Source: Selaginella moellendorffii
Lineage: Eukaryota; Plantae; Lycopodiophyta
Direction: 5' to 3'
Assembly (NCBI RefSeq): GCF_000143415.4
Contig: NW_003314281.1
Location: 1,961,882-2,025,881, forward strand
DNA length: 64,000 bases
How positions within the stretch are numbered: the first letter of the stretch is position 1; each line of letters opens with the position of its first letter. Positions 1,043-64,000 of the stretch are shown here, piece by piece. The notes below the pieces were generated by a model. The model ran no database searches, had not been told where the DNA came from, and saw only the letters and a program-made list of their open reading frames with translations. The position numbers were made by a program, and so were the translations under genes.

Positions 1043-1739
1043 TCAAGGAGCTTCCAGGAGCATCTTGCCAGTGTCAAACTCCAGAAGCGGCTGCTGCTCC
1101 AGCCAAGACTCATCGAACTCGATGTTGTTATCCGGGATCGAGAAGAGCTCCTCCAGAAACGCATCGTCCAGTGTAAACGTTTGCTCGTCACCTTCCAAGC
1201 TTCTGGATTGCGGCTGCTTGCCATCGATATCACTTCCCACAAACTCTCCTTGCACAGCTTGAATTGCATCCTCGAAATCACCATCTGCAGAGCTCAGCGA
1301 AGGCGAGGATACCAGAGGTGGTGGCGAATCCTTGTTCAAGGTTAACTCCTCTGGCTCTTGAGACTTGGGACGATCCTCCGCCAACTTATGGGTAGTGTCA
1401 CCTTGTAACGATTGGATGAAGGGCTTCATCTGGGGTGGCAGAGTTTCGAAATTGAGGCCGGCGATAGTGTCGAGCGCGTATTTCTTGCCCGTGTCCGGAG
1501 AGATAGCCGATACCGTGAGTATTGTACGTGTGAGCACATGTAGTTCCCATATTTTCTTTGTGATGCCGAAAATTCTCTTGCGGAAGCAACTTTTTCTTGT
1601 TTCCGGGTCCTGGATGTATTTGAGTGGGATTTTCTTCTTTCCGGCTGTTTTTTTCTACAACATAAATCAAAGAAGGAAAATTGAAGAACTATACATGGAA
1701 CAATCATACAAATACAAATACCTTGATTGATGGCGACAT
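1043..1739 (-). CDS. Type I-like MADS-box transcription factor (exon 1 1739-1722, intron 1721-1655, exon 2 1654-1043)
   Basis: The frame upstream of the track ORF reads AGKKKIPLKYIQDPETRKSCFRKRIFGITKKIWELHVLTRTILTVSAISPDTGKKY, a divergent MADS box. ATG exon MSPSIK joins in phase 0 through a 67-nt GT-AG intron. Acidic C-terminus, no K-box visible. Confidence 0.8.
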
Positions 1740-2016
1740 CCTATTGGGGGGACAATCCCTTAAATTGTCCCCCCATGGGGGGGACAACAACTTAAATATT
1801 ATATCTTACCCTTAAATCAGAAATAATATTTTATTAAGTGTACGATCTGCTAATTCCAGATGATCATACAAGTGTATCCCCAAAATAATCACGAAAGCAT
1901 CTTCACATGATATCTCTAAGAAATGTACTCGTGTGGAATTTCATCCTCAAAGCGTATCCGGTGGTGCGCAGTCTCTTAGAAGAAAGCTCACAACTATTTG
2001 GGAATATCTGTCATAT

Positions 2017-3711
2017 CTAAGTCAAAAGCTTTTGATAAATGAAATGGTTCCATGTGTCCACAGCCCCTGGTAAGCACCAGTGCAAGCAGTCATTTCTCCG
2101 TGGCTTACCTGGTTCCTGTGTCTTGAAGAAATTTGGATGCCCATCTGGCCTCATGAATGCGCTGTAAGTGACGTCCAAAACATCAAACCTACCAGCATTC
2201 GCCAGCCCCGCCACCTTTCCTCTCTCTACCTCCGCCACCTTTGCTCTCTCCACCTCCTCCCTCTGGATCCTGTTCATCCCGCTGCTCATGAAGGGCAGCC
2301 GTACGCTCCCGGGGGAGTATGGCACGGTACGGTTGCACACCCCGCCGGTGTACCACGCCCCGTGCTCGAAGTGATCGACCGTCACCGTCCTCGCGATGGT
2401 AACACCGCGGAACTCCCGCAGCAGGTAGCCCAGGACGCTGCGGTACGCTAACCGGTAGGCCTCTAGCTGGTCGACCTTAGTGACACCGTCGCCAGCAGCA
2501 TTGCATGGGTTGCAACCAAGAACTTTCGAGGAGTTGTAGTAGACGCTGGGGCGGTAGTACCAGTATCCCGTGGAGATCACCGCAACGTCGTACTGGAGGA
2601 CCTTGGAGGCCCAGATATCGTCCGGGGTGTCGAGGAAGACGCGGTAGGGATCGCTAGGAGATGTTCCAGGCGAGAACTTGACGAGGAACGGTGACCAGAT
2701 GTGCGTGAGCGTGAAGTTGTGGCGGTCGAATCCCCACCGCATCTCCTTGTCCGACTCCTCGAAGAAGATGATCTGGGGTCTCTCGAGCTTGTGGGGCTCT
2801 TCCACCTAGACGAGAAAGTTTCCAAAAGTTTCTAAGAGCTATTTGCTTGGAACTTGGGGGCTTACTTGGGCGAGCGCGCAGAGGAGAGATTGCATATGGT
2901 TTCTGGCCATGGAGTCGCCGATGAAGATCATCTTTTTGTTTGTCATGCGGCGAAGGAAGTCGCGGGGATCCAGAGGTGGCAGCTCGCAATCGTCGGGCTT
3001 CCACCTCCAGTTGAGGTACGTGAGGTCGGGCCTTCCATTTTTCACGCAGTTTTGGTTCGGCTGGATGAACTTGCACGTCTCGTTGGTGTAGAGCGGAGGT
3101 GTTGAATCGGGCACCCAGTTACCCTTTGAAAGATCACACTTTTCTCCTGAAAATAAAAAAGAAAGATAAAAGGAGAAAAAAAGGCAAAAAGTTCGAAAAA
3201 AGCTACCTGAGCTTGATGGTGGATTGCTGGATCTCTCCTCTAGAAACAAATCGAATATAAGCTACGGATCGACCAATCCAATTTGAGAATTTACCTGGGG
3301 TGTCCGTGGCTTGGTCATTTTTTTCTGAAATCATCCAGTTATAAAACGGGAAGTGATTGATTCCACAACTTTACCTGATCCTGGAACATAGATCCAATCA
3401 GGAAACCGGATAAAAGAAGAAGAAGTAAAAATACCTGAAGGAGATGGAGCTGGAGCATCACCGGTTGTCTCCTTTGCATTGCTGGGTGTGTCTAGAGAAC
3501 CAAATTCTCAGATCCAAAGAGAAAGACTTGCAAAACCACTAAAAATGAGGGTAACTTTAGCCAAACCTGACAATGAATCCCGGATCCTGCTGTTGATGGC
3601 GGCGAGCTCCGCCTCAAAATCCTGGCCTGGAAGGAAAGACAAGTAAACGAACCACAGATTGAGCAGCGTGAAGACGACCACTATGATCGATGTAACAGCG
3701 GCGTTCGCCAT
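2017..3711 (-). CDS. Trichome birefringence-like (TBL/PC-esterase) polysaccharide O-acetyltransferase, multi-exon
   Basis: N-terminal TM helix, CDLSKGNW, FIGDSMARN (GDS motif), RPDGHP, DCLHWCLPG (DxxH motif). Confidence 0.95.
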
Positions 3712-4365: not shown

Positions 4366-5958
4366 TCATCCTCCTCGAACCTTGTGAAACTGCCTCAACT
4401 TGGAGTCCCCCATCTCGCTCTTCCTCCTCGTCTCGATCAGCAAGTGGAAGAGAAGCTGGTTCCACGTATCGATCGGGCCGGGCAAGCACCAGTGCAAGCA
4501 ATCGTTCTGCGGCCTCTCGCCCGGCGGCTGGACGCGAAAGGTGTTTGGATGCCCGTCGGGCCTCAAGAACGAGCTCCAAGTCACATTCAACACCGCCATC
4601 TTCTTCTTCCCACTTTGATCCTCCCGCAACACTCGCTCAAACTCCTCCACCTGGATGTGATTCATCTCGTTGCTCATCCACGGCAGCTCCAAGCCGGCTG
4701 CCTGATCGAACGGGATCGTCCGGTTGCACAGCCCCCCCGTGTTCCAGGAGCCGTGCTCGAAGTGATCCACCGTGATCGTCCGGAGAACCGTGACCCCCCG
4801 GAAGTTGGCGGCCATGAACTCGAGCATGTTGCGGTGCGCGAGCCTGTAGGCCGGGAGGACCTCGAAGATGGTCAAGTTGAGGTGCGACCGAGGATTGCAT
4901 CCCAGGATGGTGTTGTTGGAGTAGTAGACGCTGGGGCGGAAGAACCAGTAGCCGGACGAGAGGATCGCGACGTCGTACTCGTGGAGCTGCGTCTCCCACA
5001 CGCTCTCCGGGACGTCGAGATGGATGTGGTAGATCTCGTCCACGAACTCGTGCTGCGCGAGGAACGGCGACCAGAGGTGGCCCAGCGTGAAGTTGTGCGA
5101 TCGAAACCCCCATTTCATGATCTTGTCATCGGTGTCAAAGAAGATCTTCTCGGGCTCCTCCACCTGTTGTTCATCGTCAACCTTTAGAGCTCCACCGGAA
5201 AAGTTCTAAGAGATTGTTAGAGATTTACCTGGGCGAGAGCGCACAGCAAGGATTGCATGTGGTTGCGAGCGATGGAATCGCCGATAAACACCATCTTCTT
5301 GCCGCGCATGGAGTCGAGGAACTTGGCTGGATCCAAGCTCTCGAGCTCGCAGCCGTCGGGTTTCCACCGCCAATCCAAGTACCCTCGATCGGGCCTCCCA
5401 TTCATCATACAGTTCTGCGAGGGCTGGATGAACGCGCACGTCTCGTTCGTGTACAGTGGCGTCCGGCTCGAATCGGGGATCCATTTTCCCACAGAGATGT
5501 CACACTCTTCGAAAGAAAGAAAGAGAATCGATCAGATGGGTCCAGGATCCTGGGACCGATTCCCAAAACCGAGTACCTGGGCTCGCGATTTCCTCTATTG
5601 GGTCACTGGAACTGCCATTCCCTCCCGGTAATTCGCACCCCTCGCATTGCTGATCGACCGATGGGGACGAAGAACCAATACCTGGAGCTGGCGAATTGTC
5701 GATTTCTCGTGGTGGGTCGCTCGTGTTCACGGTGGCGGGGGCGCTCCGGGCAGCGGCAGCGGCAGCGGCAGGAGAGAGGTCGATTTCGTGCCTGGCACCA
5801 ATGTCAGGCGCAGTGGTAAACGCGCCATCTTCGCTTCCTGGCCAACGAACAAAGGACGAGAAGGAGAAGAACCAGCAATTAGCGAAGAGGGCGATGGCGG
5901 CCACCGTTGCAAACGCCAGTGCCGTTCGCCCACCGCCCATCGCCGCCTCCTTTCTCAT
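4366..5958 (-). CDS. Second TBL O-acetyltransferase, tandem paralog (3 exons)
   Basis: TM helix, FIGDSIARN, RPDGHP, DCLHWCLPG. ATG 5958 (MRKEAAM...), intron 5576-5507. Confidence 0.95.
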
Positions 5959-59539: not shown

Positions 59540-60176
59540 ATTCCGGTCTTCTACTTGAGTTGTCTATAGTTATTATATCCACGGCCACCTCCACAGCGCG
59601 TCCATGTCGCACGGGGCAAGAATGTACCGCGCGTCATCCACGCGTCCCGCGCGGCCAAGTCCACGAGAATGCGGGGTTTGTTTAATTACATGGTATGATA
59701 TTTTATTGTAGGAACCCTGTTACTGAGATGATGGCTATGAGGGTAGAGGTAAACCGGTGTAGAATCGATGCCGAAGGGTCCACTCAACAAGGACTTTTAG
59801 TATGCAAAAATCTGCTCTTTTAAGTACCCTTTGTTCTGGTCACAAGCTCAGAAAAACAGCTTAAACTAGTCATTTAGGACATCAGTCTCCCAAAAAGAAC
59901 GTGTCGTGTTTAAACCTTGCCAATACTAATTTAAAATAGAATAAAGTAAACAATATTCTTAGCTCTAAGTTTTTACGAAGTCCAAACACAAAATAAATTC
60001 GGGAAGGAAATGCCGGGTCGCTCACACCATTGAAGATGGTAGTGTTGGACGCGCTCGGTTTTCCCATTATCATCCTCGATAAGAGTCACTTCAAGTCGGA
60101 TATCTGAGATACGGTCCACAAGCTTGATTCTGTGCGATCATCATAAAACCTGCACAGGAAAATAAAATACAGCGTC

Positions 60177-60281
60177 GGCACACTCCCTTCGCAGGAATTA
60201 TCCTGATCAGGTCGTGAGGGTCTCATCTCAGCCTACCCTTTCAGAAGAAAGACTCTTTTCAGGGCAAGCACCCCTGGTGCC
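60177..60281 (-). ncRNA. TPP riboswitch aptamer in the THI1 3' region
   Basis: Minus strand GGCACCAGGGGTGCTTGCCCT...AGGGTAGGCTGAGATGAGACCCTCACGACCTGATCAGGATAATTCCTGCGAAGGGAGTGTGCC: GGGGUGC, CUGAGA, CCCU, ACCUGAU, UAAU loop and GCG.AGGGA motifs, closing P1 GGCAC/GUGCC. Confidence 0.95.
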
Positions 60282-60456
60282 AGATTTCATCAGTTTCAAG
60301 AGCTTAAGCTTGCAAACCAAATTACCAAACAAGTAGTAGCAAACAGAAAAATACTTACTGAAAAAACAGAAAGTAGCAGCCTTATCCCATGGAGAACCAC
60401 ACGCTCGGAAGATGATTCACTCCACTCGTAAAACCAGAGATTTTTCGAGCGAGTGA

Positions 60457-61894: not shown

Positions 61895-62949
61895 TTAGTA
61901 GATTGTGCTGGCGAGAGACTTGACCTCTTTGGAGACGTCCGTGTAATCCTCCATGAAGCCTTGCTTTTCTTCGTCCTCCAGCTTGCCTTTGACAGGATTT
62001 AACAGCACCAGCATGCAGCAAGCCGGACGCTTCTGAGCGGCGGCGCCTCCCAAATCCTGAAAAGATAGAAAAGGAATGAGTACAAAGGTAAAAAAGGATG
62101 AGAAACAAAAAAGATATGATCGTGCCTCTTTTGAAGGAACGTAGATGTAAGGAATGTCCGACTCTTCGCAGAGTATTGGCAAGTGTGTGATTACATCGAT
62201 TGGTGAGATATCTCCTGCGATTACACAGAGCCTGCAAAGTAGAAAGATAGATCTGGCACTGTACGATTGCAAACTGGAAGCTCTTACCCCTTCTGTCCCC
62301 GGCGAACAGCTTTTACGACCTCCTTTACTCCCCTCCTGAGTTGCTTGTTCTGAGCCGCTGCAAAAACAAAGACCGCAAATCTTGTCACATAAGAGAGTAA
62401 TACTTGTAAGAAAAGATAACCTCAGACAGCGAATAGCAGCAGCAAGGCGAGAAAAATCCCACCTTTCAGCCGGTAATTCCAGAAAAATTAAGTCATCATA
62501 GGCCTAAGGACCAAGAGCAGGAAAAAAACTTAAGAACGAAACACAGGGCCTCAGCCAGCCTAAAGTCGCAGCACCAAGGCGAAGCAAAACTTCGTCTTTC
62601 AGCCGGTAATTCCAGAAAAACGAAACATCATCGGCCAAAAGAACAAAAAAAAAAGAGAGAGAAAAAAAGTGGAGAAATAAAGCAGAAAAGCCTCAGCAGC
62701 CAAATCGCAGCATCAAGGCGAAGAGATCCTCGCCTTTAAGCCGGTAATTCCAGAATCAAAACGATCCAAACATCATCGGCTATTGCACGCATTCATTCTT
62801 CCTTCTAGATCCATACCTCTCCGGACGAGCTTGAGCGTCTTCTTACAAAGGCGCTTGCCCGCTAGTGGCCTAGCGATGATCGACACATGCTGCCGCTTCT
62901 TGCGATCCTTTTCCTTGTCCTTCTTGTTGCCCTCGCCGTCACTCACCAT
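61895..62949 (-). CDS. NHP2: H/ACA ribonucleoprotein subunit 2 (NHP2, L7Ae family), 4 exons
   Basis: [57 protein letters not shown]. Confidence 0.95.
62418..62504 (-). ncRNA. Intronic box C/D snoRNA, copy A (snR77/snoR77/SNORD65-like)
   Basis: C box ATGATGA (62499-62493), guide TCTGGAATTACCG, D' CTGA (62469-62466), D CTGA (62425-62422), terminal stem. Confidence 0.88.
62547..62636 (-). ncRNA. Intronic box C/D snoRNA, copy B (snR77/snoR77/SNORD65-like)
   Basis: C-like ATGATGT, same guide, D' CTGA (62602-62599), D CTGA (62554-62551), GGCC/GGCC terminal stem. Confidence 0.88.
62689..62781 (-). ncRNA. Intronic box C/D snoRNA, copy C (snR77/snoR77/SNORD65-like)
   Basis: C-like ATGATGT, same guide, variant D' CTTA, D CTGA (62696-62693), AGCC/GGCT terminal stem. 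Confidence 0.83.
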
Positions 62950-62957
62950 TGCCACAT

Positions 62958-63003
62958 AAAACCCTAGCCCCTAAACCCTAACCCCTAAATCATGAACCCT
63001 AAA
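62958..63003. promoter_or_regulatory. Telo-box cluster upstream of NHP2
   Basis: aaaccctag, aaaccctaa and aaccctaaa within ~50 bp of the ATG; telo-boxes are typical of plant ribosome-biogenesis promoters. Confidence 0.65.
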
Positions 63004-64000
63004 CATTCTGGTCATCGCAAAGAACGACAAAGCTATCAAACCGTCAACTTTTCTTATAGTTTTTTGTTCAGTGGTGTTGGAACGTTAGGTCTCAGTGGTT
63101 GAAGCGTCCAAAGTATCTCTCTCCTTTTTTTTCTTTCTTTTGACGCATGGTCTTAAATGTCCTGTGCGTGCTTTTGATAACGACCAAGTTTGAAATGTAT
63201 GACACTCTTCCATGTTCCTTGTCCTGCAAAGTTTCACGTAGCTCCACACCGAAACACGAAATCTCCAACTTAACCTTTTGCGGCCAAGATCAAGAGCACT
63301 GAACGAAAACAAGTTCTCCCAGCCCAATGCGTGAATCAAAAGCCAACAGCCAGCGAAAAATGCGTGAGTTTTGGCCCCATGATTTTATTTCAGTCACATC
63401 CTTCTCATGAGACTGGCCTCCTGTTTGATCGATGCCAACAAAAGCTTGTGCTAGTGGATTCAACACGGAACATTCCACGGATCCTTCATGACAAAGTCAA
63501 CGTTTGGATCACGCTTCTAATCGCGTGTAACCCTCCAAAAGGCCCCCATGCTCCAGCGTTGAAGAAATCGGGATCGATCGTTCGTAGCTTTATTCGATTC
63601 AATCACGGAAGTTGAATCCAAACACATGTTGCTAAGAGCCACTGGCCAGCATCTGATCCTACGCAAAATAGAAAATCACTATCCAATTTCTTCTAGACTT
63701 CCAAATGTAGGGGAAGAAAGGTTGCAGGCGCAAAGATATGTTGACCCGGAAAATACTGAATGGTAAAATCTAGGATCATATTTTAGGGTTTATGCGAAAC
63801 TTCTAAAGTTCCGACGCGAGCTCCCTATGCCCCTAGAAAGCCACAGGACTTGTCGCGATGCCCTTGTCCCAAGATAAACACCAAGCGAGCACGTTTGAAT
63901 TTCCCGCCATTTTAAACTAAGGAGTTGAATAATCGGGGGTCTTCGTTTGCCCCAGAGCTTCGTAGTGTTATTTATTCTCGCATTGTCTCGCCGTTCGTCG

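Follow-up and report, generated by a model that had tools for sequence, protein, structure and literature searches.

Three tandem snoR77Y-like box C/D snoRNA units predicted in the first intron of NHP2 in Selaginella moellendorffii

The first intron of the Selaginella moellendorffii gene encoding NHP2, a core protein of H/ACA snoRNPs, very probably contains one box C/D snoRNA in three tandem copies, paralogues that are old and have diverged; this snoRNA corresponds to snoR77Y of plants, snR77 of yeast and SNORD65 of humans. The intron lies in a 64-kb stretch of contig NW_003314281.1 that was analyzed as a whole (the window), and all coordinates below refer to it unless another scaffold is named. 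The three units are on the sense strand inside a spliced RNA polymerase II intron, and each combines a complete box C/D architecture with a conserved guide. Three predicted snoRNA units in sense orientation within one spliced intron of a protein-coding gene is the arrangement by which plant intronic snoRNA clusters are recognized.

The host gene occupies 61895..62949 on the minus strand. According to the exon model and its translation, four exons (62949-62817, 62357-62288, 62231-62126, and 62056-61895, the last including the stop codon) encode a protein of 156 amino acids. This protein has an L7Ae domain (Pfam, 3.3e-26), and its top matches among solved structures are NHP2 chains annotated as H/ACA subunits (PDB, 8.2e-40), with archaeal L7Ae and SNU13 ranking behind them. 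It is also 100% identical to S. moellendorffii SELMODRAFT_163432, which UniRef names H/ACA ribonucleoprotein. The structure match (8e-40) and this identity bear out the original prediction, made from the sequence, that the host is NHP2. Intron 1 (62358..62816, minus strand, GT-AG) was likewise correctly described as enlarged, with 459 nt vs. 56 and 69 nt for introns 2 and 3 of the same gene. Its removal from NHP2 mRNA had been claimed as well, and is directly visible in RNA-seq data: in two raw-read runs from S. moellendorffii, 124 and 140 reads skip exactly 62358-62816, with junction ends that read CT..AC on the plus strand and hence GT..AG for NHP2. All three junctions of the gene are covered by RNA-seq reads. 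Intron 3 (62057-62125, minus strand) appears in these data as a GC-AG intron (GCACGA...TTTCAG), with 86 and 83 junction reads in the two runs; the junction call has 3 nt of slack, within which the GC..AG placement keeps the reading frame.

Within intron 1, a 35-nt 5′ segment is followed by the three units, which are separated by two U-rich spacers (52 and 42 nt), and the 3′ end of unit 3 is followed by a 60-nt tail that reaches to the 3′ splice site. Units were delimited from box landmarks by a script and stem pairs were tabulated in the same way; a MAFFT alignment of the three units misaligns the unit 1 D box, and stems were therefore not taken from the alignment. Unit 1 (62689..62781, minus strand, 93 nt) has the C box AUGAUGU at 62776-70, the guide at 62754-41, the D′ box CUUA at 62740-37, a hairpin at 62736-15, the C′ box UGAUGC at 62715-10, the D box CUGA at 62696-93 and a terminal stem of AGCC with GGCU. 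Unit 2 (62547..62636, minus strand, 90 nt) has the C box AUGAUGU at 62631-25, the guide at 62616-03, the D′ box CUGA at 62602-599, a hairpin at 62598-76, the C′ box UGGUGC at 62576-71, the D box CUGA at 62554-51 and a terminal stem of GGCC with GGCC. Unit 3 (62418..62504, minus strand, 87 nt) has the C box AUGAUGA at 62499-93, the guide at 62483-70, the D′ box CUGA at 62469-66, a hairpin at 62465-44, the C′ box UGCUGC at 62444-39, the D box CUGA at 62425-22 and a terminal stem of GGCC with GGUU. The distance from C box to guide is 15, 8, and 9 nt in units 1, 2, and 3, respectively, while the variable distance from C′ to D is 13, 16, and 13 nt.

The three units thus share a C box near the 5′ end (consensus RUGAUGA) and a CUGA D box near the 3′ end, and the critical GAUG and CUGA residues of these boxes are kept in each of them. 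D′ and C′ boxes are found in all three as well, partly degenerate, and are joined by a 9-bp hairpin that begins directly after D′. With three units, covariation can be illustrative only, and it takes the following form: position 4 of the 4-bp terminal stem is A-U, G-C, and G.U in units 1 to 3, position 9 of the hairpin is G-C, G-C, and A-U, and hairpin positions 5, 7, and 8 alternate between Watson-Crick and G.U pairs, with one A.C mismatch in unit 2. The predicted set of three units of about 90 nt, each with C box, guide, D′ box, D box and terminal stem, was therefore found at 87-93 nt, with the qualification that the C boxes of units 1 and 2 depart from consensus, at the last position only, and that the D′ box of unit 1 is CUUA.

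The guide itself is the most constant part of the units. The 14-mer TCTGGAATTACCGG occurs in three exact copies on the minus strand, one per unit, and no further exact copy was found outside intron 1 in the 64-kb window. In shuffled sequence, 0.32 matches with up to two mismatches would be expected by chance, and four were reached in 0 of 100 shuffles. Across the three units, 17 consecutive columns comprising the guide and its flanks or D′ are invariant, while the remainder is 54-62% pairwise identical; in a permutation of the three-way alignment, an invariant run of this length had p = 2.3e-4. An invariant guide block amid divergence elsewhere suggests that the units are old duplicates and that each copy has been under selection on its guide.

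It could be argued that the units are a tandem intronic repeat with no snoRNA function, matching 18S rRNA by chance or because they derive from an antisense rDNA fragment. In its favor, no snoRNA match in Rfam reaches the gathering score, and the mature RNAs are a prediction from the sequence. However, a neutral repeat would not be expected to hold 17 columns invariant amid divergence (p = 2e-4), nor to space C, D′, C′, and D boxes as a snoRNA does and combine them with a covarying hairpin and stem, nor to match one specific snoRNA family three times, and we regard this explanation as extremely improbable. Somewhat less improbable, though still unlikely, is that only one or two of the units yield a working snoRNA and that the rest, although snoRNA-like in appearance, are duplicates in decay. 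The CUUA D′ box of unit 1, the C′ boxes UGGUGC and UGCUGC of units 2 and 3, the A.C mismatch in the unit 2 hairpin and the unequal Rfam scores of the units are all in keeping with such decay, and individual copies could be impaired, given that D′ of unit 1 is off consensus and C′ is weak in units 2 and 3. Degenerate C′ and D′ boxes are, however, common in working eukaryotic snoRNAs. Moreover, the 14-nt guide and its flanking bases are unchanged in all three units despite 38-46% divergence elsewhere, the C-box GAUG, D-box CUGA and terminal stem are kept throughout, and no unit carries a haplotype difference.

This last point comes from a second S. moellendorffii scaffold (GL377828.1, here L001), which is evidently the other haplotype: it has the same gene, with the same three Rfam matches and the same three guide copies, and an intron 1 of 461 nt. 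The two haplotypes differ in the intron at 62661, 62652, and 62508 and by insertions at 62653 and 62528. The 270 nt that make up the units are free of differences, all five being in spacers or immediately beside unit 3 (binomial p = 0.012, with the caveat that three of the five are in one U-rich tract and are perhaps not independent). Both haplotypes of NHP2 are expressed, since the alternative letters seen in RNA at exon-1 positions 62872 (90 of 148 reads) and 62920 (60 of 89 reads), where both alleles are present, match L001.

Assignment of the units to a family relies on matches below the usual Rfam cut-off. When the window was scanned at gathering score, no snoRNA family was reached and only a TPP riboswitch was reported. 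This riboswitch aptamer (60166-60285, minus strand, 59.5 bits, above its gathering score) lies downstream of NHP2, adjoins a Thi4-family gene, and is found on the allelic scaffold L001 at 5666-5785. Matches to snoR77Y (RF01178, clan CL00057) appear only under an E-value threshold, the gathering score of the family being 52 bits. Under that threshold snoR77Y is the best Rfam family for all three units, with 27.4 bits for unit 1 (E 0.0082, full-length alignment), 31.3 bits for unit 2 (E 8.4e-4) and 34.4 bits for unit 3 (E 1.4e-4), so that the range of 27.4-34.4 bits leaves every unit below the gathering score; in a whole-window scan at E <= 0.05, unit 3 was the only snoRNA match left. These low scores can be attributed to a diverged 3′ half and to the extra hairpin, which adds insertions. 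The Infernal/Rfam scan that had been proposed as a check thus agreed on the identity of the best match for each unit and fell short on the score. In the Rfam alignments, UGGAAUUACCG and the CUGA that follows it are placed onto the guide and D′ box of snoR77Y itself.

The register of the guide points to the same family. Counted back from D′, the guide begins G1 G2 C3 C4 A5, and its positions 2-13 complement CGGUAAUUCCAG over 12 contiguous base pairs, which places A5 opposite the first U of GGUAAUU. The element would accordingly be an antisense sequence of at least 10 nt next to D′, with its predicted target opposite the fifth nucleotide, as is usual for box C/D guides. We take CGGUAAUUCCAG to be part of helix 18 (the 530 loop) of 18S rRNA, universal in eukaryotes, and the target assignment relies on that conservation. 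Judged from base pairing, the guide and its register fit the helix-18 U that is guided by snoR77Y, snR77, and SNORD65; the earlier claim that the guide is complementary to conserved 18S sequence and that the +5 rule selects the snR77-type U appears to hold, in the register of snoR77Y. In Arabidopsis, AtsnoR77Y guides 18S Um580, while yeast snR77 guides Um578 and human HBII-135 (SNORD65) guides Um627 (PMC3511168; PMC2794176). RiboMethSeq places the Arabidopsis site at Um582 and assigns it the guides At2gCDbox53.1 and At2gCDbox53.2 (PMC8583080). The plant counterpart had originally been named snoR77, which needs correcting to snoR77Y, as AtsnoR77 guides 25S Am826 (PMC8583080). A literature search found no paper that names snR77 together with SNORD65.

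A shorter element was also noticed directly before the D box, where units 1 (62697-62705) and 2 (62555-62565) carry GGCUG and unit 3 (62426-62433) carries GCUG, all on the minus strand. The Rfam consensus sequences of snoR77Y and Afu_300 show UGGCU at the corresponding place. GGCUG complements CAGCC in 18S rRNA, one nucleotide 5′ of the guide duplex; by complementarity it could provide an accessory pairing, or it could be only part of an alternative stem.

The available RNA data describe the host transcript and, to a lesser extent, its precursor. Read depth over intron 1 is approximately 1-5 vs. 130-180 on NHP2 exons; the libraries are of the poly(A) type, in which 1-5x coverage cannot separate mature snoRNA from pre-mRNA, and the profile lacks the depth to resolve units from spacers. 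In practically every read the first mate maps to the plus strand, which for the usual stranded library corresponds to minus-strand RNA, sense to NHP2. In an older run, an intron-containing contig (62330-62799) has a depth of 24.7, vs. 1650-3700 for spliced contigs, which indicates that some unspliced NHP2 precursor is present; contig depths put intron-containing NHP2 RNA at approximately 1-7%. Run X16 contains a 214-nt contig, 62634-62421, with a depth of 5.3 vs. 77 for NHP2 mRNA. It spans units 2 and 3, with ends close to their outer boxes, and includes no other part of the intron. This single low-depth contig may be a dicistronic processing intermediate, or may merely reflect patchy coverage.

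Transcription of the cluster would start from the NHP2 promoter. A motif scan identified two telo boxes (AAACCCTA on the plus strand), one at 62959-66 and one at 62973-80. The pair lies 10-31 nt ahead of the ATG (62949), and the whole window has eight telo boxes including these two. RNA 5′ ends accumulate around them, at 62962 and 62948, and the sole nearby site II motif is at 63321, approximately 370 nt upstream. The telo-box promoter was hence foreseen accurately. Just upstream, at 63009-63078, three deletions of 18, 8, and 9 nt distinguish the haplotypes, despite which both telo boxes are retained.

From these elements the following pathway can be proposed. RNA polymerase II would transcribe the units within NHP2 pre-mRNA from the promoter with the two telo boxes, and C/D core proteins (fibrillarin, NOP56, NOP58, and SNU13 in box C/D snoRNPs) would bind each unit at its C/D and C′/D′ motifs. 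By analogy with other plant clusters, for which release independent of splicing has been reported, the units would probably be freed by cuts in the U-rich spacers (52 and 42 nt), after which exonucleases would trim the ends. Exonucleases alone cannot separate three snoRNPs held in one lariat, and cleavage between units would thus be needed. Excision by RNase III-type endonucleases plus exonuclease trimming is the stated rule for plant polycistronic snoRNAs (PMC5122169). With 60 nt between its 3′ end and the 3′ splice site, unit 3 could also mature from the debranched lariat in a splicing-dependent manner. In the assembled snoRNP, the 14-nt element before D′ would pair with CGGUAAUUCCAG in 18S helix 18, and fibrillarin would 2′-O-methylate the first U of GGUAAUUCC/GGUAAUU, equivalent to yeast Um578, Arabidopsis Um580/582, and human Um627.

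Comparison with other land plants indicates that the intron is shared and the cluster is not. Intron 1 is found at the same position (after residue ~44-45) in Marchantia, Ceratopteris, Spirodela, and Vitis, with sizes of roughly 180, 95, 270, and 930 nt that are approximate, being taken from tblastn exon bounds mapped in these four. None of the NHP2 loci of these four plants and of Carex, with 2-4 kb of flank included, gave a snoRNA-family match (E <= 0.5; E <= 1 for Carex), and the 11-mer core of the guide is missing from all of them over the same extent. A related cluster in the NHP2 intron of ferns or bryophytes, for which the original prediction had suggested looking, is consequently absent from the Ceratopteris and Marchantia loci. 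In Logan contigs for P0010, the coding region is a single unbroken 465-nt ORF in each contig, with no intron at the position of intron 1 and no guide motif. Ceratopteris richardii has a second, intronless NHP2 (L004, 3001-3462) next to a PPR gene, in addition to the intron-containing copy (L005), and this intronless copy looks like a retrogene. With the cluster missing from five other plants, four of which keep the intron position, the link between guide and host is not common to these plants. A shared intron position without the cluster fits the reported instability of snoRNA-host associations, for which broad expression is the main host requirement (PMC3511168). The placement in NHP2 looks like what ordinary movement of a snoRNA into a ribosome-biogenesis gene with broad expression would produce, and not like an ancient coupling.

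A functional cross-regulation has some appeal for a locus of this kind: assembly of C/D snoRNPs on the intron might modulate NHP2 splicing, or the promoter might have been selected to balance C/D and H/ACA snoRNPs. Guide and H/ACA protein are indeed co-transcribed from one telo-box promoter, and the ~1-7% of intron-containing RNA in contig depths could be read in the same way. Such a relationship nevertheless seems very unlikely to us, considering that the cluster is missing at NHP2 in the five other land plants, including the four with the same intron position, that the Arabidopsis genes for the guide, At2gCDbox53.1/.2, are on chromosome 2 (PMC8583080), and that ties between snoRNAs and hosts are generally unstable, with broad expression as the chief demand on a host (PMC3511168). 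A more extended version, to which we also give little credence, would have Selaginella obtain its helix-18 Um guide solely from the NHP2 intron, with snoRNP assembly feeding back on NHP2 splicing and with the RNA over units 2 and 3 as an ordered intermediate; if it were true, one transcript would set both C/D-guided methylation and the supply of H/ACA snoRNPs. Simple relocation of the snoRNA remains our preferred explanation for the position of the cluster.

Set beside known guides, the Selaginella units resemble AtsnoR77Y (RF01178), yeast snR77 (RF01181), and human SNORD65/HBII-135 (RF00571) in having a D′ guide directed, by prediction, to 18S helix 18 and the first U of GGUAAUU, and they share with snoR77Y the core UGGAAUUACCG in the same register before D′. 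They differ from members of the snoR77Y family in scoring below the gathering threshold, in their diverged 3′ half and in the 9-bp D′-C′ hairpin that adds insertions. As in Arabidopsis, where the guide has two isoforms (PMC8583080), the guide is multi-copy; while the Arabidopsis copies bear the names of loci on chromosome 2, Selaginella has three copies in the intron of a protein gene. In animals, genes for snoRNP proteins such as NOP56, NOP58, and DKC1 also host intronic snoRNAs, so that guides and proteins share one promoter, and each intron holds a single snoRNA, which splicing and exonucleases set free. The Selaginella arrangement differs from these animal hosts in having three units in a single NHP2 intron, with a need for cleavage between them.

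Clusters of this general type have been reported in several plants and algae. In rice, 25 intronic snoRNA clusters were counted, and for 22 of these the promoter of the host gene has telo boxes (Liang et al., 2002, as cited in PMC3022908). Arabidopsis intronic clusters include those in introns of fibrillarin genes (PMC3022908), and intronic clusters are also described for Chlamydomonas (Chen et al., 2008, as cited in PMC5122169). Clusters that consist of homologous copies are a further subject of PMC3022908, as is co-expression with genes for ribosome biogenesis. The NHP2 cluster is like those of rice, Arabidopsis, and Chlamydomonas in placing several sense-strand snoRNA genes in one intron of a ribosome-biogenesis gene, and like the plant clusters described in having a telo-box host promoter and in that homologous copies can occur in one cluster. 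In contrast to them, it belongs to a lycophyte, it consists of three paralogues of a single guide, and the host is NHP2, which is not named as a host in the cited cluster literature. The layout is accordingly ordinary for plants, in which intronic polycistronic clusters in telo-box ribosome-biogenesis genes have already been described (PMC3022908; PMC5122169). Particular to the Selaginella locus are an H/ACA protein gene that carries predicted C/D guides, the lycophyte lineage and the three-fold redundancy of the guide.

Current understanding of how plants express their snoRNAs is unchanged by the NHP2 cluster, and its contribution lies elsewhere. A literature search found no published description of Selaginella snoRNAs, and the three units add to a lycophyte reference genome a snoRNA annotation that would be missed by pipelines relying on the Rfam gathering score. 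The conserved intron position, with no copy in four other plants, provides one more dated example of snoRNA relocation. Finally, the units give what would be the lycophyte guide sequence for the decoding-center Um that is equivalent to yeast Um578.
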